Assembly: GCA_002269645.1 (NCBI GenBank)
Contig: NIVC01001362.1
Location: forward strand, 1-64,000
DNA: 64,000 nucleotides
Source of the DNA: Macrostomum lignano
Taxonomy: Eukaryota
Direction: 5' to 3'
Positions 1,415 to 53,069 of the stretch are shown here, in pieces; position 1 is the first letter of the stretch; every line of letters starts with the position of its first letter. The notes under the pieces are model-generated. The model saw only the letters and a list, made by a program, of their open reading frames with translations, did not search any database and was not told where the DNA came from. Made by a program: the position numbers and the translations under genes.

Positions 1415-4029
1415 AATCGGAGTTGATTAAACGCTCATAAGAGCAAAGCGTGACTATGTCAGGGGCAGATGAAAGCTGGTACATGTAGCTCGTAGATGCA
1501 GCTATATCAAGTATCACAAAGTCAAAGGTTAGTGTTGGCGCCAGCGTTCTTGATAGCTATAGCTTTTAAACTTCGTTTTACAACCTAAATCTGACAAATC
1601 TGACAATAAATTAATCGGTGGTAATTACGACATATGAAATTTTAAATTTACCGTCCTGCTGTCTTACAGTCTTTAAACCAACTGTTTTTACGATTGAACG
1701 ATGCTAAAACTTTGTTTTAGATTGTTTTCGCTATCAACCCGTTTGTATTGCTAAAGTCTATGCATTTGCCAGCAAGGATAGAGCCTGTGTCAGTTCGGAA
1801 TTTCAACCTTTGCCAACCGGTTTGTTGTCAGCCTTCTCTCATGACACAAAAAACTGCAGAAATTTTTCTCTCTTCGACTGGATACTATCCGAAAAATAGT
1901 TGCATACTAGATGACAAAAAGAGTTTAGAAGAAAGCATCTATGCTTCCTAACCCTCGTTTTGCAGTATGTTAATAAAAAAGTGTTCTGAAAACGCCACTA
2001 GCTGTACGATATTATGAAGCAGAATGTATGCGCACGAGCTGTACAGACACAAGAAACGGCTGAAAGTTCCTTTTTGTTTTTTATTTAAATCTACCCTGTC
2101 TGCAGGGTACTGGCAGACTGGCCAGTACCCTAGGAAGGAAACTGGCAGGGGGTATACTCGTATTATACTGCAATTGTCTCTTAGACTGCACCGTCTATAT
2201 ATAATTTTCAACCATTATAGAACTAGCATAATAAGAATATGTAATTACATGTACTTGTATTCGGTTTGGCTCTTCTCCAACTGCTGCATGAACTCGATAT
2301 GCATGTAAAATCTGAGATGGAGTTTAAATCTGACCTGCTAAATTCAAGCCTGATATTGTAATGGACATTATGTATCCTGTGCGACAATATGATCACAATA
2401 TAAGTTAATTTAGTGCTTCAATTATGCTAGCACGACTCAGCGGGTATGATGTTGCCCCAGGCGTCAGGTCACTTGCGCGGGTGATAAGCATGCAGCTAAT
2501 AATCAAACGAAGCTTGCTTTCTGGTTTACAAGGACAGGTAGTGCTGCTGGAAGAAGACTTCAGCCTCATCAGGCATTGTGGTGAAGGGCGTTGTCCGCGC
2601 AGAATAGGGAATCTAGCTACTGCTTCAGATACTCTAACGGCCTCGTTGCTCCCTGGATGTGTGCAAATGTATTTAGTACATGTTGAAGGCCCAAGTTCTC
2701 TCTGTGAAGTGTCTGTATTGTTCTCTGTTGATGAACATTGCAGCTTGAGATCCAGGCTCTATGTACGAGTTGGGCATAGCCAACAAGAAGATTCAAGTCC
2801 ATTTAGACTTAACTTGTACATGTACGTCATTTTCGCGTGACACCACGGCATGATTGTACATATTTTCATCAAGTTGGATCTCGTTAGGATTTCGTTTTGG
2901 GTTATAGGGTTAGGGTATTAGAGTTAGGGTTCATAGGATAGAGTTTAGGCTGAGCGCTCGTAAGCTAGGGGTTTGGTTTGACAGTCAATTCGCTTGCATG
3001 ACTGCAATTTATCGGTAGTCAATTGTCGAAGACTCCAATGGAGGGAGTGGTTCGATGCTTCAAACGCATTGTAGAAGCTTAATTCAGTCGATGTCATTAA
3101 GGTTTACTCTTGATTCCGAAAGTAAGTAGGCCACGATTTATCGTTCAATATCTGTTATGTTTATTAGCTAAATACAGCTTTTCATAGTCTTCTATTGGCT
3201 ATCGAATGTAGATCTGCATCTGCGCCAGAAATATTTAATGACGCTAGCTACAAACTGTTCGATTGTTGACCTGCCCGAGACCTACTGAGCTGTTTTTGCC
3301 ATCGCTCAGGCTGCAGCTATTTTTTGCGTAGAACGCTTGTTTTTTCAGGAAATTATCTACGGTACAGTAAGAGCAGTAATTGTGCGTTCATATTCAAGCA
3401 GGGTTTTTTTAAGACAAGCCTGTCCTCCGCAGGCACGCAATGACTGTACAGTTCCGTGCATGCACAAGAGAGATTAATAGCTAGTGTCTGTCGTGATGTG
3501 CTCAGGTGTGCTCAGGTTTATTATATAGGCTCTCCAACGCATTGCTACGCATACTTAATGATAAATATATGCAGGAAAGCGAAAAATAAATTCTGCAATA
3601 AGTATCTGCTATACGAGTAATTAACTTTTTCCAGGTAAGTACGAGTATTTTTGTCTGAAACGTTTGGATAGATAAGCGAACAGAAAAATATTTAATCTTG
3701 AAACATGCCTCGTTTAGTGTTTTCCTTAGGATGATGCAGCTATGCAAATTTTCAAGTCAAGAATCTTCCCGCTTGGTTATTACTTATTATCCATATGCTG
3801 ACGGCTTTTGATGGTTAGTGAAACGGTTTTTGCAAGCTCAAAATTTGAAATCGTCGAAAAAGTGTTGCTAAGCTAGCTCCAGGATTCGAGACTTCGATGT
3901 TGTTTCTTCGATTTGATGTTTCGATATTGTCAAAAATTTTGTCTGGAATGATGAGAAATTCATGTCTACCCGACAATTGACTGCCACAGATTGACTGCCA
4001 ACCCTAATTTAAAAGCAAGCCAAAATTGG

Positions 4030-4148: not shown

Positions 4149-5924
4149 CGATATTCCGTGAAATTTCCAGCTTGTGAAAGATTCCAAATTCTTGTGATTC
4201 CGAAACTTGTGTGGAGGGCAAAACATCGAGATAACTTTACTTTATGCGACTTAAGCTTGAATGAAAACATTTAATAAAAATGAAACATATAATTTTAATA
4301 CTGTTAACAATGACCACTGTAGTAGACGGACTCGGCACTCACGAACCATGGAAAAAGTTTTGAAGGCTGATTTTTTAAGTTTGATGCTGTCTCTTCAGAA
4401 ACAGATATTAAGATGATGAGTTTGCATCCCTACTGCTCATTTGTCTGCCTGTTGCTTTCTTCTGTGATGCATTTTGAGTTCGCAGTAGGCGATTAACTAT
4501 TTCAAGGTGAATATTAGAGCAGCAGGTACTTAGCCCCCATAACACAGTATCCATATCTGCACATACTGCCTGTACAGATGTTACAGACATACGCGTGGTA
4601 AATTTTGAAAAATCATTAAGGTATAAGCGAATTTTAAAACAATTATGGCATTGTACGAGATGGATGTCTCGTAGTTGAAAAGTCTTACGTTTAATTAGTC
4701 TGTGGTACTGGGTAGCCATTTATTGGAAATAAGTATACTAGAAAAAATTGACAATAAAATGCATGAAAATGAGCAAAGCAGAAATAAAAGGCAAAATGTG
4801 AGATCAGTAGAAACTTGGTATCAAAAATGTGACATTCTGGGAAACAAAAATAAATTGACTGAACTCTGAAACAATGCAGAAAAGGTAACTGTAAGGCTAT
4901 TTATAACTAATACGGTAACACAATAATCATCTTTCTAAATCTGACTAAATTGCTAAATTAGGAATTGCACACCAACAAATAGATTGTGGCTGTACTGACA
5001 CGGTGTGGAATTTCATTTTACTGGTGCGGAAGCCAGTGAGGAGGGGAGTGAGGGGATGGTGGGAAGGAAGGTTGAGAGTAGTAGTGTAGAGTGAGGGGAT
5101 AGTTAGGAGGGAAAATGTTACCTGACTGAGCGCATGCAACTATGTTGATGAAATGAAAACAGGTCGAACGGACCAAACTAATAAATAAATAATAATAAAT
5201 GGATTAAGAGCTCAGCTTACCATCAAACTCAAATTCCTTCAATCTGTAGTGCATAGATACAGTCTACAGATACAGCAAATCTAAGTACTATGTTTATACA
5301 ATTTTCACAGAATATTATAATGAGTTGTAAATATTTCCTATCACTATATATAGGCCCTAGTTGTGTTGAACTGCAATTGTTTAGGCTAGGCTATGTTTAG
5401 TTGAGAGAACTAGGACTACAATCATTACAATCAACACAACTTATTAAACCATTAATTTCCAATAAGCAATAAACTGAAGAGATACAAGTTATTTATAAAG
5501 CAAAATTGCATTATACTTAGTGATCTAGGTCAATTAGTAGAGTATTCTAAGCTAACATCTGGCTGATTATAGTTCTGGTTTCATTCTGACAAATCAAAAC
5601 ATTAGTTTTGTTGGTACTAAGCATTAACATTCAATACACGATTATTACAATGCTGTGAAATATAATTAAACCCTCAAAACGCATACAAAGTTTGAATATG
5701 GCTACATATTATTGGCTTAGTGAAGAAAGCGAGTAGCAGAGAATTAAAAAATATGGTCGCACAAACAGACACAAAGCGTACGGAAAATCAGCCTTCAATT
5801 TTTTTCCGTGGTTCGTGAGTGCCGAGTCCTTCTACTACAGTGGTCCTTGATCAAAAACACACAAAAAATGACTGTTAACTTCTCCTTCGATTTACAATAC
5901 CTTGTCATAGTACACAGCCAAGCG

Positions 5925-7235
5925 ATGCAAGCACCGACAGAAAGTCTCATACTGCTACTGGCGTGCACTCTGACGGCGCTCCTGCCGGCTGCTGCAGCTG
6001 CTCAGCCTCAGTTGGATGACGATCTGAACAAATACATTATACTGCCGAAAAACTTCAGTCTAACGCACGAGTGCTGCTGCGAGAACATGATGAACTCGCC
6101 CAGGTTTGACTACTTCTGCCAGGTGTCTGAAAAACCCTACCCGAATGCCAGCTGCATGACTGGTTGGGTAGACTGCTCCGATCTGCCGGGCAGAATCGTG
6201 TACAGCTTGACGATAAACTGTACATCTTACCCATCTGTGACTGTCAATCTGCGAGCTCTCACCGTGGCTCACAACTCAAGCAGCATCGAGAACGAAATCA
6301 GCTATCCGCCACAACTGGTACATCTAGTGAACTGCAACGTAAACGGTTTCGAAGTTGGAATCCTTGAGCTGCCAGCTGAAAATGTCTCCCTCGATTACGG
6401 CATGGAAGTTGCACCGTTTGGAAGTCCGGATAGGCCGGGCGTTGGCGGTTACTACACTGTTAACGTCACTTATCCGCGTGAATTCCGCCAGGCTGACTGT
6501 TGGATGGTGGAATTGAACATTGAAAATGCAAGCACTCTTTGGTATCTGCCGTCCTACCTGTGTCACAAGTGCAACTCTCTCAAGAACATCTTCATATCTA
6601 ATTCTCCAATCGAATGGATCTCGATTCGCGATGTTCTCTCTTTGCATAACGTACGAAGTTTTTCTCTGACCCACAGCCGCCTAAAGTACTTTGCAAGCGA
6701 CGCTCTGAGCACAGCTATCAAGCTATTAGATAGATACCTGGAAGCTGGAGTGCAAACCGGCTGCATCAATGACACTGAAGCCGCGATCAAAGCTCTAAAC
6801 TCAATACGCAGCCGCACAGGACGGTTGAGTAGCCCCACCCAGCTATACGACACGATGGGCACCGCCAATATCGACTTCACCCTGCTATTTGGCTACAGAT
6901 TGAGAAGCGCTTTCTCGGGCAATAAAACCGAGCCCGCCTGCGACATGCCTGGCAAGATGGCCCTGACCGATCTCGATTTGTCTTTCAACGCTTTGACGGA
7001 TATACCTTTCTCAATTAGCATGTTCGATCAGCTGAACCGGGTCAATCTTAGCCACAACAGAATCCGCAGCTTGTACCACGGCTGGATGTGCTGGTATCCG
7101 CCAGTTCCCGAAAACCAGAAGAACACTTCAAACCGGCACTGCTATTGGTTCAGAGCGGCTCGAGCTAGTCTGAAGGTCCTGGACTTGTCATTTAACGAAA
7201 TCAATATGATCGGAGAGATACAGCCTTGGCACCAG
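5925..7235 (+). CDS. Toll-like receptor, exon 1 (signal peptide, N-terminal Cys cluster, first LRRs)
   Basis: ATG 5925 gives MQAPTESLILLLACTLTALLPAAAAA (signal peptide); LRR motifs LTDLDLSFNALTDIP, LNRVNLSHNRIRSL, LKVLDLSFNEINMI; ends at CAG|GTGAG donor (7236), phase 0. Confidence 0.9.
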
Positions 7236-8114
7236 GTGAGCTAATTATTAATACTAAATTGTTGGTTATCATTATACAAAGCAATTGAAAGGGAGTCATT
7301 GAAGTTTGTGTTGGTTGTGGCCGTTTCAAGACCCCGGATTCGTAAAGTGTTGGAACACGATGACACTGATATCGCTCACTCTGCGATCCTATCGATATGA
7401 GTAATAGTCGAACCGGTCGATAAATTGAACCTTCGCAGTAATCAGACACCGTTTTATGGCTCAATTATCTTTTCATTTAGCTCTTAGCTGACTACGTAAA
7501 AAATTGTTACAGAATGATCAAACAGATTTTTAGAAACCCATGAGTCGGGCTGTGTCATTTTAATGGTTTTGAGCAAATACTCATTTAAGTAAAAAAAGAT
7601 ATAAGCAAAATAGTTTTTGTCTCGAAAAAAGGAAAAACGTGCTTCTCCCTACTTTTTTCGGTTAATTCTGCCGTCTAATATTTTCAAAGAAACGCAATTT
7701 CTTCCCCACACTTGGCTGGGCCGTGTCTGTCTACGGTTAAATGCTTTTTCATTTCCTTGGCCAGGCCAAAGAAATGATTGGCTAGGCCAAAGAAATGAGC
7801 TCTCAGCTGGAGAATTCGGCCCAGAGAAGGGAAGAAGCGGAAAGTAAAGCTCTAAACCAAACTGACTGCAATCGATAGCTTTTCGGGCCGGTGGACTAGA
7901 AACGCCGAGACATCTTATCCAGGTCTTTTCATGGGGCTTCCAGTTGATAAAATGAGGATTTCAGGTTAACATAAGTCTCTAGAATGAAGCTTTGCTGTGG
8001 GCTCCAATCATATGCATGTTTAACTTGAAAAAAATCAATGAGTTAAGTGTCTCATAGAATTTTAATATGATTTTTCAGAAATATTGTTCTCTAAAATTCA
8101 CCTCTCCGCTTCAG

Positions 8115-10362
8115 GTGGCGTTGTCGTATCTCATTCTCCGCGGCAACAGAATAATGAGCGTCAACCCGGATGCGTTCGCTTACTCGCCATTAGCCACGAG
8201 CTTGCTGAATTTATATCTGGATGAAAATCTTTTGTCGTATTTTCACCTGGAATGCCTGACCCGACTGGAAGTCCTGAGTCTCGAGGGCTGTCGAATCGCG
8301 AATATCGAGCAGGAATCGCTGCCCAAGTCGAAATCGCTCAGGGAAATCAATCTCGATAGCAACAGAATTTTCGCCATCGCTCCGGGCGTTTTTGAACAGC
8401 TTGAAAAGCTTGAGTTTGTTCGGCTACATCATAACAGGCTGATGCACTTTTATGCGAACAGTTTCAAAACGCCCCCAAGATCGACCTTGGCGTCCAGAGT
8501 CATCATACACATTGCCAACCAGAGCGATATACCCATATGCGACTGCAGCCACGTATATAAGAAGATACTGCAGGATGAGGAGTTTGGAAATCCCCAAAAA
8601 AGCTACGTTTATCCGAGGATTTTGCCAGAAGATATGTCCACCGAGTGCCAGTTCTTCTCCAGATTCAGCTCAACCAGAGTGGTAAAGAAACTAAGCGAAT
8701 CAAATCAAAGTGAGTTTCTATGTGAATTCCAGGACAATCAAAAGCACAAGCTGCCCTGGAATTACTGTAACGAAAACGTCACTATTATGGGTCGAGAAAA
8801 GTGCTTTGTGAAGTGCATCTACGGCTGCCGGTGTTACCACGATGACGGATGGGATATTTCTGACCTGGACTGCACCCCGGGCAATTCCACAGTCACCACC
8901 GACCTGGTTAAGATGCGATTCGAATTCCCAATCAAGTACATGTTCATGGCCGGACTTAAGGACTCGGAGTTCTTCCGGCACGTCTCCAAGGGATCATTTA
9001 AATGGTTGAACGAAAGCGATTCAAATGAATTACTGTTCTTGCAGCTGAATAATAGCAACGTCAAATATGTTGAGAAAGATGCGTTCGCAAATTTTGAGAA
9101 CATAGTTGTTATTTACCTGCACGACAACAATATTACCAGCATTAATCCGAGCCCTTTTATTGGAAACTGCTTTTTAAATAAAAATCTAAACCAGATCACG
9201 CTGCATAACAACAGAATGAACTACATCGACCCGGCAATAATTAATGGAACGTGTCCTGTGGGCCTTTCAGGTGTGAGCTTAAGCGGCAATCCGTGGCACT
9301 GCTCCTGCCATGGAAAATGGATCGAGCTCCACAAAACACTCATCCAGGACTCTAGAAAAACACAAACAGTATCGGACTTCCGAAATATGTATTGCACAAT
9401 TGACGCGTCTATAGTTGGTGCATGCACGGAGAACCGTGAAAATCTGCAATGGAGTGACGTATGCCAAAATGCAAATGATACGGCTAATTACCCAGTTGCC
9501 GACGAAGGCAGACTTGTCAAAGTTTGCGAGCTCATAGCGGACTCGGCAGTGCAGCAGCGAAGGCAGATCGTCCGGATGATTCTAACCTCAGTATTCGGTC
9601 TCGCGCTGCTCGGTGTCGCGATGCTCGCCGTCCGCCGTCGACACCGACTGCTGGCCGTGGTTCGAGTCCTTATCCTCCTCAAGTACCAGAGCAGTCGGCG
9701 ACTGCAGCAGCAGGCATCTCGGGACTCGCTGCCGTACGACGCGATGCTGTGGGCGTCGGACAGAGACCAGGACTGTCTGGTCGACGTGCTGAACTGCGTG
9801 CGCAGCGCCTCGGGCGGAGACGAGCTCGAGCTGTGCGTTCCGGAGAGCTTCCTCTACTCGGACCTGTGCTCCTGTCCGCTCACCTACTTTGACTGTCCGG
9901 CTGAGGGAGCCAAGTTCAGCGGCAAGGTGGTGGTGGCTTTGTCCGAGAGGTTTCTCGACACCCAGTACCTGGCTCTGTGTCAGGTGATTCGAGAGCTCGA
10001 CAGCTTAGGTCGGAATCCGTTCAAGGACATCGTGTTTCTGCGCCTGAGCTCGCGCAGAGTGTCGCTTCAGCGCCAGAGACAGCTCGGACCTGAGGACGTG
10101 GAGGCGTTCCACACTCTGCAGAGAATCCTCGCAGAGAGCGACATCGAATACAAGTCCGTGGACTGGGAGTACAGACTCATCGAGCGCATTCGGAACCGAG
10201 ATCCGGCCGCTGTTCTCCTGTTGGACCGAACAGCGGAACTGGAGTTACCGACGGCAGCTGCTGGCGGTTCGGAAAGACCAGCCGCTACAGCAACTGCGGA
10301 GCTTCCTGATCTTCCTGACGATGAGCAGGCGCTGATTGTCGACGTTGAGCAGCCAGTTACGA
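8115..10362 (+). CDS. Toll-like receptor, exon 2 (LRRs, internal LRRCT/LRRNT Cys clusters, juxtamembrane LRRCT, TM helix, first TIR-like domain)
   Basis: Acceptor CCGCTTCAG| at 8114, phase 0 matches exon 1; LRRs LSYLILRGNRI, LEVLSLEGCRI, LREINLDSNRI; PICDCS and CIYGCRC clusters; LSGNPWHCSC LRRCT; TM ILTSVFGLALLGVAMLAV followed by RRRHR; TIR-like YDAMLWAS..D...LELCV...KVVVALSERFL...IVFL. Donor GA|GTAAGT at 10363 (phase 1); without splicing the frame stops at 10389-10391. Confidence 0.88.
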
Positions 10363-10585
10363 GTAAGTATAACTGCCAGAGCTTTTTGTAGTCTCACTTG
10401 CCCCTTTAGTTGTTAATTTCGTTCCGAAAATTAAACTCTGATACGCAACTCTAGAGTACTACACGTAGCTCGTACATTGAGTTGAATTAGACATTTTCTT
10501 ATCTCGAGAAACTCATGATGCATCTAAAGAAACAATTTTTATTTGTAAAGCTCCAAGCTAACGTTTTAATCAACATATTCAAAAG

Positions 10586-11004
10586 TTCGAGCCGCCGCCG
10601 CTCCCGGTGCGGCTGTCAGTGACTGGCCACCGTTCCACTCGGACAAAGTGCCGGAGGTCTTCATCCTGTCTGCTCCTGAGTCCGCCTCTGACTCGGAGTC
10701 CCGAGCCGACCCAGATTCGAGCTCACACACCGTCGTCGAGCTCATCGTTCGTCGCCTCCAAGGCGTTCGGCTCGGCACCAATGACGCGGCCCTGGCTGCT
10801 CGCTGGCCTGACAACTTCGAGGGCGCCTCGCCAGCCGGCCGCATCAACAGCTTCCTGATGAAGCGAACTCGCCAGTTCGTGCTGCTGCTCAGCAACGGCC
10901 TGCTCAGTTGGCTCAGAGACGAGGCCGAGCTGCAGTGCGAGTTCCAAGCCTTCCTCGCTGCGAACTCGTTCAGACGCCGCCTGCTGGTAGTTCAGGTTGG
11001 ACAG
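10586..11004 (+). CDS. Toll-like receptor, exon 3 (second TIR-like domain)
   Basis: Branch-like GCTAAC ~10557, acceptor AAAAG| 10585, phase 1 matches the 10363 donor (A+TT=Ile); encodes VFILSA...VELIVRRL...RTRQFVLLLS...LQCEFQAF...RRRLLVVQVG (TIR beta/alpha pattern); donor CAG|GTGAGA at 11005. Confidence 0.75.
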
Positions 11005-11043
11005 GTGAGACTGAGTGAGCAGGTGTGAGTTTTGAGTAGCTTT

Positions 11044-11216
11044 GCCTCACTGCTGTGTGAGTGAGACAGCTCTCCCTCACTGCTGTGTGTGAGTGAGACA
11101 GCTCTCCCTCCCTGCTGTGTGAGTGAGACAGCTCTCTCTCACTGCTTTGTGAGTGAGACAGCTCTCCCTCACTGCTGTGTGAGTGAGACAGCTCTCCCTC
11201 ACTGCTGTTTGAGTGA
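11044..11216. repeat. Intronic minisatellite, 30-32-bp unit GTGAGTGAGACAGCTCTCCCTCACTGCTGT(GT), ~5 units
   Basis: Direct reading; lies in TLR intron 3; same unit as the much longer array at 20686-21750. Confidence 0.9.
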
Positions 11217-11240
11217 GTATCGATCTTTATTCACTCGCAG

Positions 11241-11414
11241 GTGGACAGCCGGTCGAGAGCTCGCTACCGGGCGCTGGCGAATCAGCGATTGGACGGCGGG
11301 GAGTCCGGGTCGGCGACGAACTGGTACGACATGAGCGCCGAGGACTGCGACGTCGAGGCGCTGGGGTTGTGGCTGGACGGAGTGCTGTACAAAAAGGCTG
11401 ATTTACGTAAATAA
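11241..11414 (+). CDS. Toll-like receptor, exon 4 (end of second TIR, stop)
   Basis: Acceptor TTCACTCGCAG| 11240, phase 0; VDSRSRARYRALANQRL...WYDMSAEDCDVEALGLWLDGVLYKKADLRK*; the four exons total 4152 nt = 1383 aa + stop. Confidence 0.75.
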   Translation: MDSRSRARYRALANQRLDGGESGSATNWYDMSAEDCDVEALGLWLDGVLYKKADLRK

Positions 11415-11999
11415 TATTTAATTTTAAATTGGACATCCATGGCACATTTTGACTTGAATAGCTCGTACACTCTAAGAAACTAGAAAACGTAGACTTAAAT
11501 TCTGAAGTGTCATATAGACTATTTACATGTACTTATCCGTATATGGTATACGTACTTTAGTTGTTGAGGATTCAAACCTAGGCTACTATTAGTAGCTAGT
11601 AGAAATCTTCTCCACGAAGAAATAGAAGAATTTATGCATTGAATCTGTGCCATAGACCTATTTTTCGTATTTTGTACTTTATTTCCAGCTTTTTGACAAC
11701 GGTATCTGGCAGACGTATCCGGAAGACGTTTGTCTTACTGTTTGTTTGGTCGTGAGCTTTTTTGTCTTTTCTATTTATTCATCGTGCGCCTATTTTTGTT
11801 TCGGAAAAATCTTTAATCTTTTTTTTTAGTTTTAATGCCTTTAGGTTGTTGCTGTCTTATTGTAGAGATCATCACTCGAAAACTTTTATAGCGAGCGTGT
11901 GAATTGGTTATAATTTTCTGGTAACTATGCCATTTTTCTATTTTTCTTAGCTAAAGTACTAATCTTAGTTAGCTAAAAAATATGTACTTCCCTAAACTT

Positions 12000-14430
12000 T
12001 TAAATATCTGTATTAACAGAGTGTTTTTCATCGTTATATATCGACAAATTATCCAAAAAGGTCGTGAGAACTTTTAACTTACGCCTGTGTACTTCTGAAT
12101 GATACATGCAGCATATGAAGGAAGGTCTCAGTAGTCTATGGCTCTGAGCTGGCAGAGGTTCTCGGACCTGAAAACGTCGGAGAGGTCCGCGTTTGGGCCG
12201 AGGTAGGTGAGCCTGTCCGTAGGTGAGCCTGGGGCGTTCACAGATGAAGTGCTCCGCATTCTCAACACCGGAGGGGCAGAATGGGCATTCCTCATTGCAG
12301 ATTTTCCTCTTGAGGTAACAACCGTGACCCGAGAGAGTCATGGTCACCGCCCTGATGTCCCTGCGGTTGAGTCCAAGTAGGGCCCCTCGAAGGGCGGTGG
12401 TAAGACAGGGGACAGCCGCAGGGATTGCCGGTAGTCTGTGGCGTTAGAGGCATGCAATAGTGGGCTCAGCACCAGGCTTACGAGCTACGGTCTGCGATCC
12501 TAAACACCTGCACCCCCTCTATTCTGGTGCAGGAATGGCAGGAGAACTCTCTCCAAGCTGACTCACAAGCCGACTCAGGGGTTCACGTTCCGCATGTGTT
12601 CAAGGCAGCTCTAGGGCTGCTGGACTGACTGGGCTCCGGCGGTGGCAACCCATCCGTGGGCTTGGCCGCTTTGGGTACGGGCTCCGCCCGGAAGTGAACC
12701 TGTGCGTATCAGGTACCTCTGGCCACGGCTCTGAGGAACAGGTATCACCCTCTGACTTTAACAGGGTATGCGGCTAGCCCGCAGGCTCCGGGGACAGCTT
12801 TTTGTAGCACCTTGCTGATGGACCTTTGGTTCGGCCTCTGGTTTCTCGAAGCCGGGCTCTTAACCGGGGAGTTTCTCGGTTGCTAGTGAGCCGGTAAGGG
12901 TAGCCCACCCCCCGATCGCTACCTCTTGGCCTGGCTGTTGGGTTTGGGTTGCGGCGCAGCGTCTTCTCATCTCTAGCCCCCACTCGCCTTTCAGCGACTC
13001 ATGGAGTATTCATTTACCTCCGCCACGTCCGAGGCTGCTGGAGCACCAAACAAGGTTGGTACCGCGGCTTAGCCGGACATTCGCAACACCGGAACCTTGG
13101 GTGACTCTTAGTCAGCCCCTACCGCCACTCAGGACAATACCGAAGTAGCTGGACAACAGGACGGCGGACCTCAGACCTCTCGAGCCCTTAGAATTGCTCG
13201 CTACAAAGCTTTTCTCCAGCCCAAAGTGGAGGAACGGAGGAGTGCAAAAGCCGCCCCTCCGGCCGCCTCTGAGGAGGGTGCCGGTAACTCTGCGAATCTC
13301 GGAGAGTGGAGCCGACATCCGACAAGGCCCCTCCCGTGGTGGGACCTCTGCCCGTGTGGAAACTCCCACGGCCGCGGAGAGATCCAAAGCGGGGGACGCT
13401 GGCCAACTCTCCGGAGGAGCACCTCTCCGGTGCTTTGATGCCACGCACAGGTTGATCCGAGTCGTGACAACGGGGGCCACAGACAGGGGACCAGTAAAAG
13501 AACCGGTCGAGCCAGCCTTGGCCAGGCGATCGGCCAACTTGTTGTCGGGGAGGCCCGAGTATCCCGGGATCCACCTTAGGGACACATTGTAGGAGGCGCT
13601 GAAGAGGTTAGGCTGCGCGATGCAGTCTAGGACTGTACGCAAGCAGGTGGTGGTACGTTCAAGTGGATCGTCGCTTGACTGTCTGAGTGGAGGATAATCT
13701 CCTTCCCCCGAACACGCTGATTGTACGGCTCCATGGCGCAGGAGCTGATGTCGAGAACTTCGTTCTGGAACAAAACGGTAGAGCAGGTGCCGATTTGCTG
13801 GGAGAAGGTCTTCGCGGTTCTCCCTCCAGACACGATGCAGTAGCCGTAGCCAGAGGCGGAGTTGATCTGGGACCCGTCAGTGAAGCAATGAGTTTCACGG
13901 GCTTTCCAGTTGTCTCTTGCTTCGTGACGTGGTGGAATGCTGGTTTTCAATTTGAGCGAAGGACAGAGCGAGAACGGGATTGCATCCGAGAGGGTCGACA
14001 GGCCTCCCACTGCTTTAATGTACGGCCGGAGGTTCCGCTTTCTGAAGGCGAGCAGACGGCGGGTGGTCTTCATTGCCTCCCTTCTGACAAAGAGGTCATG
14101 GGGGAAGGTCCAGGAAGGTACTCATGCCAGATAAGGGCGTCATGATAGCTCGACAAGCCCGGCCCTGCACCCTGTTAAGAGCTTCATGAACCCCTTTCAC
14201 CTTCAGGGCACTGTTCGAATGAAGCTGGCAAAAGAGATGCCGGTCTCATAATGGAAGTGTACATCCACCAGAGGCGGCGGGGTGAAGCCACAGCTATAGC
14301 GCCGAGCAAACCCAGGAAGACTTTGAGCCGGCGAAGTACTGCAAGATTTGCCCTCGCAATTTTCACCTCCATTACTTCATTGAAGCATCGGGTGGATATC
14401 AATGCATAGGCAATAAGAGAAGCGAGTTGC
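12000..14430 (-). mobile_element. Degenerate non-LTR retrotransposon (RT C-terminus + RNase H + C-terminal Cys/His motif; R1/LOA/I-like)
   Basis: Minus-strand fragments: WMYTSIMRP (RT thumb region), FTDGS..FQNE..HSDSQA and WIPGYSG..NKLADRLAK (RNase H), LSGHG and CPFCPSGVENAEHFIC; broken by frameshifts and stops. Confidence 0.85.
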
Positions 14431-20474: not shown

Positions 20475-20657
20475 CTAGCTGGAATTAGAATTGGAACAAA
20501 TGTAACTCAAATGTAGCTTTCTTGTACAGCGCGCGTCCAGCCACAACCCCAGCGCCTCGACGTCGCAATCCTCGGCGCTCATGTCGAACCCGCACTCCCC
20601 ACTTTCTAGTCGCTGATTCGCCAGCGCCCGGTAGCGAGATCTCGACCGGCTGTCCAA
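20475..20657 (-). CDS. Inverted duplicate of TLR exon 4 (C-terminus of TIR-only copy)
   Basis: Acceptor TTCACTCGCAG| conserved; LDSRSRSRYRALANQRLESGECGFDMSAEDCDVEALGLWLD matches exon 4, then a 1-nt indel gives a new tail ARCTRKLHLSYICSNSNSS*. Confidence 0.7.
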   Translation of the reverse strand: MDSRSRSRYRALANQRLESGECGFDMSAEDCDVEALGLWLDARCTRKLHLSYICSNSNSS

Positions 20658-20685
20658 CTGCGAGTGAATAAAGATCGATATTGTA

Positions 20686-21750
20686 TGTCTCACTCACACA
20701 CAGCAGTGAGGGAGAGCTGTCTCACTCACACACAGCAGTGAGGGAGAGCTGTCTCACTCACACACAGCAGTGAGGGAGAGCTGTCTCACTCACACACAGC
20801 AGTGAGGGAGAGCTGTCTCACTCACACACAGCAGTGAGGGAGAGCTGTCTCACTCACACACAGCAGTGAGGGAGAGCTGTCTCACTCACACACAGCAGTG
20901 AGGGAGAGCTGTCTCACTCACACACAGCAGTGAGGTACAGCTGTCTCACTCACACAGCAGTAAGGGAGAGCCGTCTCACTCACACACAGCAGTGAGGGAG
21001 AGCTGTCTCACTCACACACAGCAGTGAGGGAGAGCTATCTCACTCACACAGCAGTGAGGTAGAGCTGTCTCACTCACACACAGCAGTGAGGGAGAGCTGT
21101 CTCACTCACACACAGCAGTGAGGGAGAGCTGTCTCACTCACACACAGCAGTGAGGGAGAGCTGTCTCACTCACACACAGCAGTGAGGGAGAGCTGTCTCA
21201 CTCACACACAGCAGTGAGGTACAGCTGTCTCACTCACACAGCAGTAAGGGAGAGCCGTCTCACTCACACACAGCAGTGAGGGAGAGCTGTCTCACTCACA
21301 CACAGCAGTGAGGGAGAGCCGTCTCACTCACACAGCAGTGAGGGAGAGCTGTCTCACTCACACACAGCAGTGAGGGAGAGCCGTCTCACTCACACACAGC
21401 AGTGAGGTACAGCTGTCTCACTCACACAGCAGTAAGGGAGAGCCGTCTCACTCACACACAGCAGTGAGGGAGAGCTGTCTCACTCACACACAGCAGTGAG
21501 GGAGAGCTGTCTCACTCACACACAGCAGTGAGGGAGAGCTATCTCACTCACACAGCAGTGAGGGAGAGCTGTCTCACTCACACACAGCAGTGAGGGAGAG
21601 CTGTCTCACTCACACACAGCAGTGAGGCAGAGCTGTCTCACTCACACAGAGCAGTGAGGGAGAGCTGTCTCACTCACACAGCAGTGAGGGAGAGCTGTCT
21701 CACTCACACAGCAGTGAGTTACAGCTGTCTCACTCACACAGCAGTGAGGC
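20686..21750. repeat. Expanded intronic minisatellite (30-32-bp unit CTCACTCACACACAGCAGTGAGGGAGAGCTGT), ~34 units
   Basis: Reverse complement of the 11044-11216 unit; fills the intron of the inverted TIR copy. Confidence 0.95.
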
Positions 21751-21802
21751 AAAGCTACTCAAAACTCACACCTGCTCACTCAGCTGATTGCGAGAGTCTC
21801 AC

Positions 21803-22207
21803 CTGTCCAACCTGAACTACCAGCAGGCGGCGTCTGAACGAGTTCGCAGCGAGGAAGGCTTGGAACTCGCACTGCAGCTCGGCCTCGTCTCTGAGCCAGC
21901 AGAGCAGGCCGTTGCTGAGCAGCAGCACGAACTGGCGAGTTCGCTTCATCAGGAAGCTGTTGATGCGGCTGGCTGGCGAGGCGCCCTCAAAGTTGTCAGG
22001 CCAGCGAGCAGCCAGGACCGCGTCGTTGGTGCCGAGCCGAACGCCTGAGAGGCGACGAACGATGAGCTCGACGACGGTGTTTGAGCTCGAATCTGGGTCG
22101 GCTCGGGACTCGGAGTCAGAGGCGGACTCAGGAGCAGACAGGATGAAGACCTCCGGCACTTTGTCCGAGTGGAACGGCGGCCAGTCCCGAATCGCGCTCA
22201 GGATGGC
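21803..22207 (-). CDS. Inverted duplicate of TLR exon 3 (second TIR domain); possible TIR-only gene or gene fragment
   Basis: From DWPPFHSDK to VVQVGQ differs from exon 3 at only 5 residues (H>N, Q>S, A>V, G>S, S>C); donor CAG|GTGAGA conserved; homology stops upstream of DWPP; candidate acceptors ATAAAG| (22208) and TTGCAG| (22271), both phase 0. Confidence 0.7.
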
Positions 22208-22695
22208 CTTTATAATGCTTAATGTTATAAATTTCGAGCTTGTCGTTTTATGATCTGTTTCACAACAGTGCTGCAATAATTTGTGTACTTACTTTGTGTA
22301 GAAACAATAACAGCGACATTTAAAAAGACAAAAACAGTTGGAAACGACAGAACCTTAAGAAAATTAGTTACTCAGAAGTAGTATTTAAAGCATCCTCAGC
22401 ATGCATACTTCTAGTAGTATGCTTAGATTGATATTCTTAGTCTATACACTATAAGTAATACATGTTTAGCCACAAACTAAGGACTTTGTTAAAATCAACT
22501 TATTATGTAATATGTCATTTTTAAACCACCTGACAAGGCACCGCTAATCCTGCATCCTTTGTATTTACTCAGCTTTGAGGCCTTTCTCATAAGCTCCGTC
22601 ATTATAAGACTTTACAAACAGCGCCTGCATGGGGTTATTTTAAAGCCAGAGTTGCCAACTCAACTTGCTTTTACAGTGCAAACATAACTATTGGC

Positions 22696-23517
<822 letters not shown>

Positions 23518-24124
23518 GTGCATTAATCACATGCAGTTATTACAGGTGTACATCTGAGTCTTTGAGTTTCTCCCTTAGAAGTCCTCACTTCCCGTTATTA
23601 TCCATCCTCAAGAGCCAGCCAGACCAGACAACTGACGAAGTTCTCCATCCATTCTTCCCAGAACATCCGTCAGAGATGCTAATGAGCCGAAAAATTGAGC
23701 TCAAGAAAGCTCCACGCTCTGCCTGGAGGCAAAGTGATTTCCCATCTTTTTCCCTTTATCTCTATTTTTATAGATTTTGCCTGTCGAAGTCTCAAGCTTA
23801 GCATGCACTTTTACGGCCGAGCAAAATCGCCTGCTGCAGTGGACTCAGACAGATGGAGCTCTGGGAGATTTTTCTCCATCGTTGCTCTCCACTTGCTTCG
23901 ATTGTCAAAGCAGTTTTTGCCTGAGCAATAATAATCCCCCAATCACTGATCCTCTCACTCGAAGGGATTCGCTAAATTCCGGACCTAGTTAGTAATAGAA
24001 AAAATATATAATATAACAATAGTATTTAGTGTCAAGCTCTGCTCAGAAAAAGTACACAATTTTATACTTTCATTAAACATCACACTTTTTATCACATGCA
24101 CTTTTTATCAAATGCTGTATGACA

Positions 24125-27274: not shown

Positions 27275-27758
27275 TCCACTATACTATAACCTATATTACT
27301 ACGTGCATGGTGGGACGCAGCTCATTTCAACAGCTCAACAAGGTTTTGGAGATTAAAAAGTGAGAAAGTGACAGGAAGCGAATGAAAAACAAGGCTCACA
27401 GGCCTCATAAAAGTGCACTTGCACTCAATCGCTGATTGGTCTAGCAGCTATGCAGCGAGCGAACCGCTCTTCACACCCGACCGTACAGAGAGAATCTCCT
27501 TAGTCCCGAAATTGGCAATGATATATAATACACGTATACGGGTCTGAGAGAGAAGGGGAGAGAAAGCCAAGAGGGAGTATAGCTATAAGTAGACACCCAA
27601 CTCAAAAAGTTCCCGCTGAGAGGAGAAAGTGAAAATCGTAGGACAGGCGCAGACTCCATGCAGCCCTTGTAGTCGAGCCATGCCGGCTCTTCAAACTTGA
27701 ACAAGTTCCGCTTTGAACTTTCTTTCAAAAAGTCTATCTTCATCCAGCCATTCACGCG

Positions 27759-28938
27759 ATGGGCAGCGCCATGGCTCGTCTGCTGGCAGTTTGTGCCACT
27801 TCAAAGTGCCGCCATAGTGTCCATCCACGTCAGACACATCCTGTACAGCCGCTAAATCCGCTTCCAAGACAGCATTGGAAGCTGCAGAATCGTCGTCATC
27901 AAAATCAGCATCACCGAGCTCCTCTGGCCCCGATACCGTTGGAGAACTGGCGATTGACTCCGCCGCTGAGACAGTCGCTGCGTCAACGCAGGCAGGAGCC
28001 GCCACCTCATCAGCGTTCTCAAGAAGCTGCTTCTGCAGATTCTTCATCAACATTATCCAGCTTCGCAATCCGGCTGAGTCCCAACGGGGAGGATGACGGC
28101 TCTGACTTTGCGGCATCGTAAGTGCCGTCAGAAGTCTAGAGATCGGCGACAACGCAGTCTAGCAAGCGCGGTTGCGGGAGAGCTCAGCAACAGCAGCAGC
28201 AGCGGAGGCAACCAATGCCGAGTGAGATTGAAGCGAGCCACCGCTTCAGCTGACGGGCCAGCTCAGGTGATTGGCAAAGGGTTTGATTCTGTGCATGGAC
28301 GCATTTATTTGGGGCTTTTATTAGGGTTGTCGTACGATTCAGAACCCAATGCACAGAGAGTGTACATGCCTGTACACGCTTGACGATTAGAAAGTCAGGG
28401 CACCTGTTCACCCTGTGTGAGCGTGTGCACGAGTGCGCGCTTGCGTGTGCTCAGGAGTCAGGAGTACTGCGGGACGATGTCGTCAAATTCGTTGCGTCAG
28501 TATGCTCACGACTCTTCAACGAATATCTTTTTTGATTTACAGGTGATTGACAGCTGGCCTCAGGTGCAACTGAGACTGCGTCACAAGCAACATGAGGAGC
28601 TGCTCAGTCAGCATCAACATCGACCAGATCAACGAGGCAACGGTGCAGCAGCTTCAGCAACAAGGCAGCAGAAGCTGCACGCATTTTGTTGCCTGCCAGT
28701 CAGCCGATGGACCGTCGACTGTCTGCGACGAAGTGCGGATAAAATTGCAGCTCTGGCGACCCGGTTCGACTGTTTGCTGAACGAGCCGGCGGCTTCAGTC
28801 GCGGACGACGCAGGAGAGTCAAGCGAATCGGGCTGCTGCCTGGAAATCTGGGGACCGAATGTGAGCAGAGTGAGGCAGTTTCACGATCGGCTGCTCATGC
28901 TGGCCGCTAGTGAGAATTGCCCCGGCATTAGATTTTGA
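27759..28938 (+). CDS. Probable exons of an unidentified multi-exon gene (terminal exon 28543-28938)
   Basis: Donor ATC|GTAAGT at 28118, acceptor TTTTGATTTACAG| at 28542, protein-like terminal ORF ending LEIWGPNVSRVRQFHDRLLMLAASENCPGIRF*; full structure not resolved. Confidence 0.35.
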
Positions 28939-29019
28939 GAGCAAGTAATAAACAGCTGCATGGACTATTTAGGATACGCTCGTACTGGTCGGTTCCCTAT
29001 TAGAGCTAAATGCATGTGT

Positions 29020-29610
29020 CTACCCCATCTATCTCATCTACCCCATCTACCCCATCTACCCCATCTATCTCATCATCTACCCATCTACCCCATCTACCCC
29101 ATCTACCCCATCTATCTCATCTACCCCATCTACCCCATCTACCCCATCTATCTCATCTACCCCATCTACCCCATCTACCCCATCTATCTCATCATCTACC
29201 CATCTACCCCATCTACCCCATCTACCCCATCTGTCTCATCTACCCCATCTACCCCATCTACCCCATCTATCTCATCTACCCCATCTACCCCATCTACCCC
29301 ATCTATCTCATCATCTACCCATCTACCCCATCTACCCCATCTATCTCATCTACCCCATCTACCTCATCTACCCCATCGACCCTAATCCACCCATCTACCC
29401 CATCTACCCTATCTACCCTATCTACCCCATCCACCCCATCAACCCCATCTACCCCATCTACTCTATCTACCCCATCTACCCCATCAACCCCATCTACCCA
29501 ATCTACTCTATCTACCCCATCAACCCCATCAACCCCATCTACCCTATCTACCCTATCTACCCTATCTACTCCATCAACCCCATCTACCCCATCTACTCTA
29601 TCTACCCAAG
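29020..29610. repeat. 9-bp CATCTACCC tandem array
   Basis: Direct reading; explains STP/PIY/HLP ORFs. Confidence 0.95.
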
Positions 29611-29614
29611 CTAC

Positions 29615-29881
29615 CAGGGGCGTTGCCATGGATTTAATGTGGGGGACAAAGCTACGAATTCTACACGTACATGTGCATTATTTTCAGAGTCGGTGTTGTC
29701 AGCTGCTCATTTTTGCGCCGCAGGCACTCATTTTGGTGCCACAGACGCTATGTTTTGTCGCCCTGAAGCAAAATTATTGATTTCCATAACGCGTAACAAG
29801 GTTGGGTGAGGGGGGACAAAGCATTGGCATGCCACCCCACAGCTTTTACTGGGGGGGGGGAATATGGGTGGCGACGCCCCC
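29615..29881 (+). mobile_element. Small non-autonomous element with imperfect terminal inverted repeats (CAGGGGCGTTGCCA ... TGGCGACGCCCC)
   Basis: Terminal inverted match; internal GCGCCGCAGGCACTCATTTT motif and AGCTTTTACTGGGGGGGGGG end recur inverted at 37682-37955. Confidence 0.55.
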
Positions 29882-34591: not shown

Positions 34592-34788
34592 TCAAGATTG
34601 AGTCCGGTCGCTGTGCACTCTGGAGTGCTTACGCAACGATGACGGATGGCTGTAGGACTTGCCGCAGTTGGCCACCTGACAGCGATAGCCCTTGGCGCTG
34701 GCGTGCACCTGCGCGTGCTTCTTCCGATCCGAACTGTTGGCGAAGCGCCTGTCGCAGCCGGGGAAGTCGCAGGCGAAAGGTTTCTCAC
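34592..34788 (-). CDS. ZIC: Zic C2H2 transcription factor, exon 3 (ZF4, ZF5)
   Basis: Acceptor TTGCAG|GT GAG AAA; [25 protein letters not shown]...[14 protein letters not shown]: [10 protein letters not shown] and HPSSLRKH are diagnostic for Zic; stop TGA 34594-34592. Confidence 0.95.
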
Positions 34789-34887
34789 CTGCAATGCCCA
34801 GGTTGACGAATTCAAGACACTTAACAAGGGGCTAAGTTAGGAATTTTTTATGGGAATTTCACATCTTTGAAGAGGCTTTTGACATGT

Positions 34888-35171
34888 CTTTGACTTGGCT
34901 GCAGGGCGATCCGAAGACGCAGCGACGAGGCGAACGTCGCCCATTCCGCTAATTCCTGATAAGCCGCATTGGCTAGGGCGCTGGACCGGCAGGGAGGTCC
35001 GCCGGACCTGTCTGCAGCGTTGTCTTCGGTGGGGAAGAAAGGAGGCTCGTTTGGTAGCCCGGAGGAATCGGATAAGACATGGAATGTTCTCGGGCCGGCA
35101 AGCGTCGTCCAGGGACGGGTTGGGCCCCGAGGTAGTGGAGCCGGTCTCAGTTGAAGGCCGGACTGCTAGCA
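34888..35171 (-). mobile_element. 5'-truncated non-LTR retrotransposon insertion with 13-bp target-site duplication
   Basis: GCTTTTGACATGT at 34875-34887 and 35172-35184; minus strand encodes ...DDACRPENIPCLIRFLRATKR, resembling the C-terminal end of the 12.1-12.3 kb element. Confidence 0.75.
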
Positions 35172-35421
35172 GCTTTTGACATGTACTTAAACCAATTTTG
35201 AAGGAAGAGTTCGTTAATCAATCCTAATACATGTTATTAAAGACTACCAATTTGAAAGAATCCACCATGCAACTACAGTAAGTTCAAAGCATTGTCTTTC
35301 AAACTTATCAAACTTTGTCGGTTATATTGTCTAAAATTCTTGTGCTTTTGAAAAGGTTGCTTCATTCAAAACACAAGAGGCCATTATGGTTGCTCTTAAA
35401 AATGATTTACAACATCTTTAC

Positions 35422-35637
35422 CTGTATGAATTCTTAGATGAATCTTCAAGTTCTCTGCCCTAGCGAATCGACGCCCGCAGTTGACGAAGTTGCATCGAAA
35501 CGGTCGCTCTCCGGTGTGAACCCGGATGTGATTCACCAGCTTGTAGCGAGCGGTGAATGGCATAAGCTGACGGGGACAATTCAGCCAGTGACATACGTGA
35601 CGGTCTTTTCGTTCGTCAGCCTCATGACTGTCGTTTG
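35422..35637 (-). CDS. ZIC: Zic, exon 2 (ZF2, ZF3)
   Basis: [58 protein letters not shown]; acceptor CCCCAG| and donor G|GTAAAG, both phase 1. Confidence 0.95.
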
Positions 35638-36173
35638 CTGGGGGGGGGGGACAGCAAACAATATTGATCTTATCAGCCCTTAAGTTGCACGTCGATACAC
35701 CCAAAAATAGCAGCAATAATAGTAATAATATTAACAATAGTAGTCGCAACAGTTAAAAAGGCGTTTTGGAACCTAAATACAACGCAACTGTGCTACATCA
35801 TCCCAGCAGGACTGAGGCAATTCTTCTCATTCAGCAGACTCCTGAACGCATACAAGCGAGCCAATACTGTACTCACGCACTCATGCACCCACTCACCAGG
35901 GTGCACAGCGGCTCTGACTTTCTAAACGTCCAGCATGTTTGCTCTCTGAGCCTTTGGGGCTGGCCCTCATGGGTTCGAATCGCAGGACAACCCACGGGAT
36001 ATTTTTTACAAAAGACCTCAAATTAGATCGCGCAAATGAAATCGAATCCAGGACTCGTGGACTGCTATAAGCTACTCTGCCCCGGCACGCAACCGAAGGT
36101 GACTATTTCAGTTTTACACAAAATTACATGCAGAAGTAAATATAATCCATGGTTACTCGGTGTCAGCACTTAC

Positions 36174-45572: not shown

Positions 45573-46087
45573 AAGTGCTGCAGTATTATAAAGACCTACC
45601 CAGCACAGAAGTGATCCCAACGCCAGATCAGGACAGAACAGACTTTGACAAGTGTCTCTCCTGTCTCCTGGATTCTCAACGTTTGAATTTAAACAAAGAA
45701 ATTGCCTGCATATTGGTGCTTGGCGGCCTAGGCGGCAGGGTAGATCACACGTTCGGCAATTTGCACACACTTGTGAAATGGTCTAGCCAGTGCAAGCCTA
45801 GGATCTACTTTGCTACTCAGCATGATCTGTGGGTATGCCTGCCGCCGTGTCAAGAGTCTGTTGAGTGCCGCCTGTTGCGGCCGAGGCAGGGCAAATACGC
45901 CGGTCTGATCCCGTTAGATCAGCCTTGTCTGAACGTTCACACTAGCGGGTTGAAATGGAATCTTACTGGCGACACTCTCAGCTTCACTGGTTTAGTATCA
46001 ACGTCTAACGAAGCTGTTGACGAGTTAATAATAGCTAGATGGAGTGGCGGTCACCTGTTGATTACGGTTACTTATGAGTTGACCTAG
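45573..46087 (+). CDS. TPK1: Thiamine pyrophosphokinase, last exon
   Basis: Acceptor CCCGCAG|; E-VLQYY..TPDQDRTDFDKC..LGGLGGRVDHTFGN..LIPL..TSGLKWNL..LVSTSNE are canonical TPK motifs; stop TAG. Confidence 0.93.
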
Positions 46088-46915: not shown

Positions 46916-47519
46916 CTAGTTAGAGTTTTTTTTAGAGATTTTTAACCTTTGCAAAAAACTTAAAAAAATATTTTTAAGTTATTCAGTGTTTAAAAACCAG
47001 TTAGAAATTTTAACAGTCTTTAGATTTTTGACTAACTCATGGAATAGTTTTTTGCGAGTATATGTTTTACTTCTATTTGCACCAGTTGCCACTCTAAGTA
47101 GTGTAGTTGAGATTTGCGTTTAGAAATTCGATATTACTTTTATTCGCAATCAGCTCTAGATTATCGTCTCTATCGATGTCTTACTTTGATATGGATTATT
47201 TTCCACGTTGTCGCTCAGCTAATTGTAGGAACATGACAAAATATGCGTTATTTTGTTAGTTATTTTTTCCACATTTTGTTTCTATATTTTAGTAGTCTTT
47301 GATTCCTTTTTAAAGGCGTTGTCTTTGAATTTCGCAATTTCGCTAACTTTTATAATATCAATGTGAAGCATTCAATATAGTAGTATCCTTTTAATTACAA
47401 GCTATAGTATTATTTGTTCTGTATTTGTACCGGTACAGAAGTGCGGTGAACCTACATGTACAGTAAAACATTTTTTATGCTTTTTACATTTAGACCGAGT
47501 TTTTACGCAAATGTTAGCA

Positions 47520-47735
47520 GATACAGATAGATACAAGCATGAATACATAGATAGACATAACACACAGACAGACAGAAACACACAGGCAGACAGAAACACG
47601 CAGACAGGCAGACAGACAGACAGACAAACAGAAACACACAGGCAGACAGAAACACGCAGACAGACAGACAGACAGACAGAAAGACAGACACAGACAGAGA
47701 GACAGACAGACAAACAGACAGACAAAAAGACAGAC

Positions 47736-47834
<99 letters not shown>

Positions 47835-47873
47835 AAGACAGACAGACACAGACAGACAGACAGAAAGACAGAC

Positions 47874-47944
<71 letters not shown>

Positions 47945-48017
47945 AAGACAGACACAGACAGACAGACAGACAGACAGACACAGACAGACAGACAGACAGA
48001 CAGACAGAAAGACAGAC

Positions 48018-48086
<69 letters not shown>

Positions 48087-48190
48087 AAGACAGACAGACA
48101 GACAGACAGACAGAAAGACAGACACAGACAGACAGACAGACAGACACAGACAAACAGACAGACGGACACAGACGGACAGACAGACAGACT
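47520..48190. repeat. (GACA)n microsatellite
   Basis: Direct reading. Confidence 0.97.
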
Positions 48191-48284
48191 CACTCTCCGC
48201 CCCGCTCTCCCGCAGCTCCTGCAGGCCAGCACTCGCTAAGCACAGGAATCCAACAGAAAGCCTCATCAGCAGCCTCAGCCGGCC

Positions 48285-49670: not shown

Positions 49671-49829
49671 ACTTGTCAAAGGGCTTGTTGACAGCTCTAT
49701 TTGTATTGATATCGTTATCAGATTAAAGTGCATTAATGCTTTCACTTTTTTGCTGGGGGATACCCGAGTCCTGATTTAAAATCTTTGTCTCTGAAATAAT
49801 ATTCAAATCCTAAGCCATCGGTTTTATTT

Positions 49830-51256: not shown

Positions 51257-51271
51257 TTCTATACGATTAGA

Positions 51272-53060: not shown

Positions 53061-53069
53061 GTGAGTACC

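Follow-up and report, generated by a model that had tools for sequence, protein, structure and literature searches.

A probable multiple-cysteine-cluster Toll-like receptor with an additional conserved C-terminal module in the flatworm Macrostomum lignano

We analysed a stretch of 64,000 nucleotides from the flatworm Macrostomum lignano (positions 1-64,000 of contig NIVC01001362.1, assembly GCA_002269645.1; hereafter the window), which holds a four-exon gene at 5925-11414 for a 1383-residue membrane protein. Our reading, to which we give a probability of about three in four, is that this protein represents a diverged P-type (multiple-cysteine-cluster, mcc) Toll-like receptor (TLR) with an additional conserved module at its carboxy terminus. 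The gene is real, intact and expressed in M. lignano, and was previously named only 'hypothetical protein'. Its exons, introns and main cytoplasmic and membrane segments are arranged as follows.

5925-7235, plus strand: exon 1, residues 1-437, with the ATG, the signal peptide (~5925-6002), the N-terminal cysteine-rich cap and the first leucine-rich repeats (LRRs).
7236-8114, plus strand: intron 1, 879 bp, phase 0, GT..AG.
8115-10362, plus strand: exon 2, residues 438-1186, with LRRs, the internal LRRCT-like and LRRNT-like clusters, further LRRs, LRRCT, the transmembrane (TM) segment, module 1 and the start of the linker.
9567-9635, plus strand: TM segment, residues 922-944, IVRMILTSVFGLALLGVAMLAV, with the highest Kyte-Doolittle 19-residue windows at residues 922-926.
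9732-10199, plus strand: module 1, approximately residues 977-1132, a putative divergent TIR domain.
10363-10585, plus strand: intron 2, 223 bp, phase 1, donor CGA|GTAAGT.
10586-11004, plus strand: exon 3, residues 1187-1326, with the end of the linker and most of module 2, which starts with DWPPFHSDK at 10621.
11005-11240, plus strand: intron 3, 236 bp, phase 0, donor CAG|GTGAGA, with a minisatellite inside.
11241-11414, plus strand: exon 4, residues 1327-1383 and the TAA stop, with the C-terminal helices of module 2 and a box-3-like GLWLDGVL.

Joined, the exons form a 4152-nucleotide coding sequence of 1383 codons with no internal stops. All three introns are GT..AG; the donor of exon 1 reads CAG|GTGAGC, and at intron 2 a codon is split after its first base by the donor at 10363 and completed with two bases at the acceptor, 10585/10586. 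A homolog search with exons 1-2 retrieved GenBank PAA68921.1 (BOX15_Mlig017824g1, UniProt A0A267F586; P0001), which is 100% identical to the 1383-residue translation and whose gene GenBank calls at exactly 5925-11414. The original prediction, made from the letters of the window, had proposed four exons, a start at 5925, a GTAAGT donor in matching phase and a product of 1383 residues; these splice borders and this identity show it to have been accurate to the base. The entry is deposited as 'hypothetical protein' in GenBank, and its UniProt counterpart is called 'TIR domain-containing protein'. The GenBank annotation of the assembly was derived from RNA-seq, using STAR, StringTie, TACO, a de novo transcriptome, TBONE boundaries and TransDecoder open reading frames (PMC5730564), and the 10362/10586 and 11004/11241 junctions therefore already rest on transcript assemblies.

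The extracellular part is formed by LRRs interrupted and closed by cysteine clusters. Pfam reports LRR families only, all of them in the ectodomain (LRR_8 at E 3.3e-26 over five stretches, LRR_4, LRR_1 and LRR_5), with LRR_4 and LRR_8 already matched in exon 1. Hydropathy gives just two peaks, a signal-peptide-like one at residues 7-27 and the TM segment, directly after which a basic RRRHR provides a stop-transfer sequence. Between two LRR blocks we read an internal CDC...C...C cluster, followed by a C..C...C.CYHDDGW....DC motif (CIYGCRCYHDDGWDISDLDC) that matches the LRRNT pattern of insect Toll, C..C.CYYD.SW....DC. A second LRRCT, NPWHCSC...C...C, is membrane-proximal and lies ahead of the TM segment. 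The Pfam LRRCT and LRRNT models report neither cluster at E<=1; by direct reading, the protein has the two features that define an mcc TLR, more than one LRRCT and an LRRNT between LRR blocks. Among the features used to define TLRs in PMC8609888, it has the LRRs, the signal peptide and the single TM segment.

Similarity searches point to the same family. Leaving aside LRR-only proteins that cover <20% of the query, the best matches outside Macrostomum are insect Tollo, 18-wheeler and Toll-7. Phmmer places the receptor in single collinear alignments, running from about residue 460 to 1056-1078, against residues 560-1140 of insect proteins of the Toll-6/7/Tollo type; these alignments cross the LRRCT-LRRNT junction, the second LRR block and the TM segment and continue into the TIR domain. 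The proposal of an mcc TLR-type receptor in a flatworm, made before the host had been named, is supported by the signal peptide, LRRs, cysteine clusters and TM segment, and the host is indeed a flatworm.

The first cytoplasmic module (module 1) is, judged by profile comparison, a strongly diverged TIR domain. It retains box 1 as YDAMLWAS, betaC as VVVALSERFL and a box-3-like DWEYRL. Comparison by hhalign of a module 1 profile of three Macrostomum proteins with a Toll TIR profile, built on 14 insect Toll sequences among the homolog-search matches, gives a probability of 92% (E 6e-7, 119 columns). The score of 45.2 compares with 12.8 +/- 2.4 for column shuffles, none of 200 of which reach it (z ~13). 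Searched in the reverse direction, the module 1 profile finds eight of its ten best domain matches inside insect Toll TIR regions, a 2.4% share of all residues searched. Module 1 of the M. lignano paralog P0077 reaches E 0.12 against Pfam TIR (12.6 bits, cut-off 21.3). UniProt gives the name 'TIR domain-containing protein' to models that carry module 1 only, and not to the ectodomain-only model P0073; the name presumably reflects a PROSITE-type profile match.

Several results speak against a TIR identity for module 1, or at least against a conventional one. Neither Pfam TIR (PF01582) nor TIR_2 (PF13676) matches it at E<=10, and searches of the PDB by sequence and by profile return chance-level matches only (E 0.2-1.7 across the searches with both modules). 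The AlphaFold2 model, built from a three-row alignment, has beta-alpha alternation at pLDDT 56.8 and pTM 0.57; Foldseek finds no PDB structure for this model at E<=0.001, with plant TIRs only at ranks 27-42. Alignments of three rows are too shallow, so AlphaFold2 and Foldseek gave no structural confirmation of either module. Box 2, with the BB loop, is not conserved, which leaves signalling competence uncertain. A PADLOC scan returned nothing for module 1.

The literature would favour a more sceptical view, in which the gene encodes no TLR homologue at all but an LRR transmembrane protein whose cytoplasmic region mimics a TIR. Orus-Alcalde et al. 2021 count 0 TLRs in M. lignano and consider an early loss during platyhelminth evolution probable (PMC8609888), Saco et al. 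2023 report no TLRs in Platyhelminthes (PMC10279657), and a planarian review likewise states that flatworms have none (PMC7958881); the remark, made with the original prediction, that surveys report flatworm TLRs as absent was correct. A TIR mimic would agree with this absence, with the lack of a Pfam TIR or TIR_2 match and with the degenerate box 2. We nonetheless regard it as very improbable, because the profile-profile probability of 92% stands some 13 standard deviations over shuffles and the alignments to insect Tolls are collinear through the LRRCT-LRRNT junction, the TM segment and the TIR. The surveys screen first with a TIR hidden Markov model (HMM), as the pipeline of Orus-Alcalde et al. 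2021 does (PMC8609888), and a gene whose TIR fails such a first filter would be dropped or counted as 'LRR-only TLR-like'.

Beyond module 1, the diverged TLR that we favour continues through a low-complexity linker of ~60 residues, rich in Ala, Pro and Glu and begun in exon 2, into a second module (module 2) of ~185 residues (approximately residues 1198-1383) encoded by exons 3-4. An exhaustive phmmer search with the 430-residue tail, covering 1.84 billion representatives, returned M. lignano proteins only. Among these P0077 (BOX15_Mlig015932g1, 1357 residues, contig NIVC01001489.1) comes from an unrelated locus and matches both modules in the same order (query 14-419, E 7e-16, 28% identity), with an LRR ectodomain and TM segment preceding them. 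Its gene also has four exons; the first ends at the homologous ...PWFE|V... in phase 0, as at intron 1 here, and the inter-module intron is again in phase 1, 12-14 residues ahead of a conserved WPP motif, as in the PAA68921.1 gene. Module 2 of P0077 is a single exon that lacks intron 3 and is 31% identical to that of PAA68921.1, sharing the blocks WPP, PD.FE...GAS, TRQFV(L/I)LL, RR(L/I)LV and YR.LA, and exon 4 aligns to the C terminus of P0077. Every GenBank model extending to the 3' end, six in number (P0001, P0068, P0070, P0074, P0077 and P0081), includes module 2, which is kept in three paralog groups at identities down to ~30%.

Two further copies of the gene lie on contig NIVC01002037.1. 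One is near-identical (L002 9501-15989 against window 5425-11914), with seven substitutions in ~6.5 kb: four in exon 3, two in exon 2 and one in intron 1. It represents either assembly redundancy or a very recent duplication in the DV1 line, in keeping with the redundancy for which the DV1 assembly is known (PMC5730564), and with just seven differences it says nothing about selection. About 8.3 kb upstream of this copy is a tandem paralog (Mlig012993/Mlig004240; L002 1-3721), whose ectodomain has 45-54% protein identity and is undetectable by blastn. Against window 9489-11396, its TM-TIR block is 95.7% identical at the DNA level and its module 2 block, including intron 3, 92-97%; blastn finds no similarity to the PAA68921.1 gene in its ectodomain, linker and intron 2. 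This alternation of blocks suggests patchy gene conversion, or a recent block transfer of the cytoplasmic parts. GenBank ends the tandem paralog at 914 residues (P0073) because of a TAG stop just before the TM segment. Exon 3 differs from its counterpart in the tandem paralog by seven synonymous and one non-synonymous change, a pN/pS of 0.05.

The window also contains a third, partial copy.

20515-22294, minus strand: an incomplete, inverted copy of the block running from intron 2 through exon 3 and intron 3 to exon 4, with no ATG and with the acceptor AG kept.

This inverted copy is closest to the copy in the tandem paralog (~90% DNA identity). The part corresponding to exon 4 has suffered a deletion and is frameshifted at its C-terminal end, the pN/pS of the copy against the PAA68921.1 gene is ~0.41, and GenBank, whose annotation here reaches up to 21414, calls no gene in the region. 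A minisatellite of 30-32 bp (AGCTCTCCCTCACTGCTGTGTGAGTGAGAC) occupies 11038-11217 in intron 3 (5.9 copies) and 20686-21756 in the inverted copy (34 copies), and is found as well in intron 3 of the tandem paralog (L002 ~3072-3537).

Some of these observations count against a single two-module receptor, and would suit a separate transcript or gene for exons 3-4, with the 1383-residue model a read-through or assembly chimera. If intron 2 is retained, a stop follows nine codons on (SKYNCQSFL*), and the receptor would then end at ...QPVTSKYNCQSFL* with 1195 residues. The older, UniProt-only models P0002, P0071 and P0072 (A0A1I8... accessions), short single-module forms of 1068-1195 residues, do run into intron 2 and end there, so a single-module isoform may coexist. 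The orphan inverted block at 20515-22294 indicates that exons 3-4 can be duplicated on their own, and the tandem paralog that they may be converted or duplicated apart from the linker. Exon 3, however, has no start codon before its domain, and its phase 1 complements the GTAAGT donor exactly; at six loci, the RNA-seq-based GenBank models join exons 3-4 to the receptor; and P0077, at ~30% identity, retains both the fusion and the intron phase. No stand-alone module 2 protein appears among the 1.84 billion representatives, the only other carrier being the artefact P0076. Six fused GenBank models, the fusion in P0077 and the pN/pS of 0.05 together make a separate transcript very unlikely, and we would be surprised to see it borne out. 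Module 2 is, by these sequence comparisons, part of the same protein and under strong purifying selection. The earlier placement of exons 3-4 in the receptor's own coding sequence stands: the RNA-seq-based GenBank model supports it, as do the matching architecture of two other paralog groups and the conserved phase-1 intron.

P0076 (UniProt A0A1I8HAL1, 2297 residues, 'C2H2-type domain-containing protein') was considered as a stand-alone module 2 gene and rejected. It is a chimeric minus-strand model running from 59799 down to 9591, which strings together antisense translation of the TLR exons, microsatellite open reading frames, a real C2H2 zinc-finger gene and the inverted module 2 copy. An open reading frame of 153 residues at 27691-28152 (minus strand) possesses an ATG and a stop of its own and matches nothing in Pfam; P0076 joins the inverted module 2 copy to it via a weak GTTTGA donor.

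What fold module 2 adopts is a finely balanced question. That it is another TIR-like domain, of flavodoxin-like alpha/beta type and diverged in the extreme, we regard as about an even bet; otherwise it would be a lineage-specific domain. Using hhalign, module 2 aligns to the insect Toll TIR profile over 85 columns in the correct register, at a probability of 5.8% (P 0.0065), with RQFVLLLSNGLL--SW on the TIR betaC-alphaC stretch and RRRLLVVQVG on betaD. One of 200 shuffles reaches this score (z ~4), and six of the 15 best domain matches of the module 2 profile, each insignificant, lie in this same stretch of TIR domains. The low-confidence AlphaFold2 order of secondary structure, E-H-H-E-H-E-H, would suit the C-terminal half of a TIR. 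In this weak alignment, the W-L-R-D-E of module 2 sets a Glu against the TIR alphaC Glu, the catalytic residue of SARM1-like NADase TIRs, which has no counterpart in module 1; the alignment is too weak to carry an NADase claim. Death domain and SEFIR were also considered for module 2 and rejected: neither has Pfam support, and the predicted beta strands argue against the all-helical Death fold.

On this evidence the protein could be a twin-TIR receptor, module 2 being a genuine second TIR that serves as an in-cis adaptor or platform, and the whole corresponding, in a flatworm, to the SPP-2TIR mccTLRs of bivalves; we place the chance of this a shade under evens. The match to the Toll TIR profile is weak, though above background and in register, ...FVLLLSNGLLSWLRDEAEL resembles the TIR betaC-alphaC signature hhhLS..h..(S/E)W...E(L), and the C-terminal LW...L resembles box 3. 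Bivalves, in addition, provide a precedent for mccTLRs with two TIRs (PMC4929906, PMC10279657). The premise that canonical TLRs have one TIR thus needs a qualifier, and a two-TIR receptor would not be unprecedented.

A good deal tells against a second TIR, beginning with the hhalign probability itself. Pfam, PADLOC and NCBIfam report nothing for module 2, and PDB searches by sequence and profile again give chance-level matches only. Taken alone, module 2 of P0077 has no significant match to a TIR HMM. The AlphaFold2 model of module 2 (three-row alignment, pLDDT 37.7) is unusable, and Foldseek of this model returns no PDB entry at E<=0.001, its matches being generic three-layer alpha/beta folds (small GTPases, CheY-like). 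Compared by hhalign with module 1, module 2 scores 14.7 (probability 0.3%), equal to the shuffle background, whereas the twin TIRs of bivalves cluster as duplicates (PMC10279657).

These results are accommodated by a lineage-specific, non-TIR domain of alpha/beta or mixed type, gained in the Macrostomum lineage, whose TIR signal would be a chance Rossmann-like beta-alpha-beta resemblance. Restriction of the tail to M. lignano proteins in the phmmer search, the silence of every family library and the generic folds matched by the poor model would all be expected of such a domain, which we consider a serious possibility though somewhat less than an even chance. It accounts less readily for a TIR match over ~50-85 columns in the right order whose score one shuffle in 200 attains, and a TIR origin is the most economical one for a module directly downstream of the TIR in a TLR. 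A TIR-like origin of module 2 is therefore plausible but not demonstrated, with the odds roughly level. The original prediction of two tandem TIR domains holds in part: module 1 is placed as a TIR by profile-profile comparison, module 2 shows a marginal local signal, neither reaches Pfam TIR or TIR_2, and the description 'two tandem TIR domains' is not established. Its further suggestion, that module 2 acts as a built-in adaptor or effector, is speculation.

For the diverged TLR with an added module, a working scheme can be proposed. Ligand binding to the LRR ectodomain would bring two receptors together, and on the cytoplasmic side module 1 would engage in TIR-type homotypic contacts, both steps by analogy with the family. 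Module 2, held on its flexible linker, may give this Macrostomum receptor family a further surface of its own for docking or signalling. We infer ligand-induced dimerisation and signalling competence, as we do the fold of module 2.

The rest of the window is rich in repeats. Very long micro- and minisatellite arrays lie at 22665-23801, 29010-29780, 47402-48374, 49828-52500, 55616-58894, 61818-62468 and 62888-63877, and yield spurious open reading frames, the longest of 1092 residues, on either strand and in more than one frame. The second exon of a gene resembling glycerol-3-phosphate dehydrogenase is immediately followed by one of these arrays, ~3.3 kb long. By Pfam, the window holds this FAD-dependent (DAO) glycerol-3-phosphate-dehydrogenase-like gene, a thiamin pyrophosphokinase, an HCNGP / SAP30BP-like gene and a C2H2 zinc-finger gene, together with an RNase H remnant of a retroelement; the loci so identified are 52845-53069 with 55074-55598 (plus strand), 45575-46087 (plus), 48285-49670 (plus), 34610-35638 (minus) and 13112-13642 (minus).

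The main consequence of these results is not the possible second TIR, but a probable small TLR family in an early-branching member of a phylum reported to be TLR-less: the complete LRR-TM-TIR arrangement, collinear with insect Tolls, is seen in this gene and in at least two other groups of paralogs. Were this accepted, the inferred loss of TLRs would shift to a later branch of flatworm evolution, and M. lignano, for which RNAi and transgenesis are available, would become a system for testing Toll function in a flatworm. We advance only tentatively, and think rather unlikely, the stronger proposal that the early-branching Macrostomum kept bona fide Toll receptors, with no basal loss in Platyhelminthes, and equipped them with an in-cis, TIR-derived module that may replace a missing or diverged adaptor. 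As a component of TLR cytoplasmic tails, the conserved C-terminal module is new whatever its fold, and presence or absence calls that depend on a TIR HMM threshold can miss diverged receptors.

Comparison with known receptors places these features in context. The bivalve SPP-2TIR, or 'Toll-2', receptors resemble the M. lignano protein in combining an mcc ectodomain with two tandem globular cytoplasmic modules after the TM segment. Both bivalve modules are recognisable TIRs that cluster as duplicates (PMC10279657, PMC4929906), whereas M. lignano module 2 is not recognisably a TIR and shows no similarity to module 1, and there is no sign that the two groups inherited the two-module state from a common ancestor. 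Among P-type receptors of protostomes, insect Toll-6/7/8 'Tollo' and 18-wheeler share with the M. lignano protein a signal peptide, two LRR blocks split by LRRCT-LRRNT, a further, membrane-proximal LRRCT, a single TM segment and a TIR. Identity to these is 21-25%, and the M. lignano receptor differs in a TIR that Pfam does not call, in the loss of box 2 and in the extra ~185-residue C-terminal module after a low-complexity linker. The closest counterparts are its own paralogs, BOX15_Mlig015932g1/g2 (P0077, P0081) and Mlig012993/Mlig004240 (P0003, P0073, P0074), which have the same architecture, including module 2, and share intron 1 and the phase-1 inter-module intron with the PAA68921.1 gene. 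P0077, ~30% identical, is set apart by an extra intron inside the TIR and an uninterrupted module 2.

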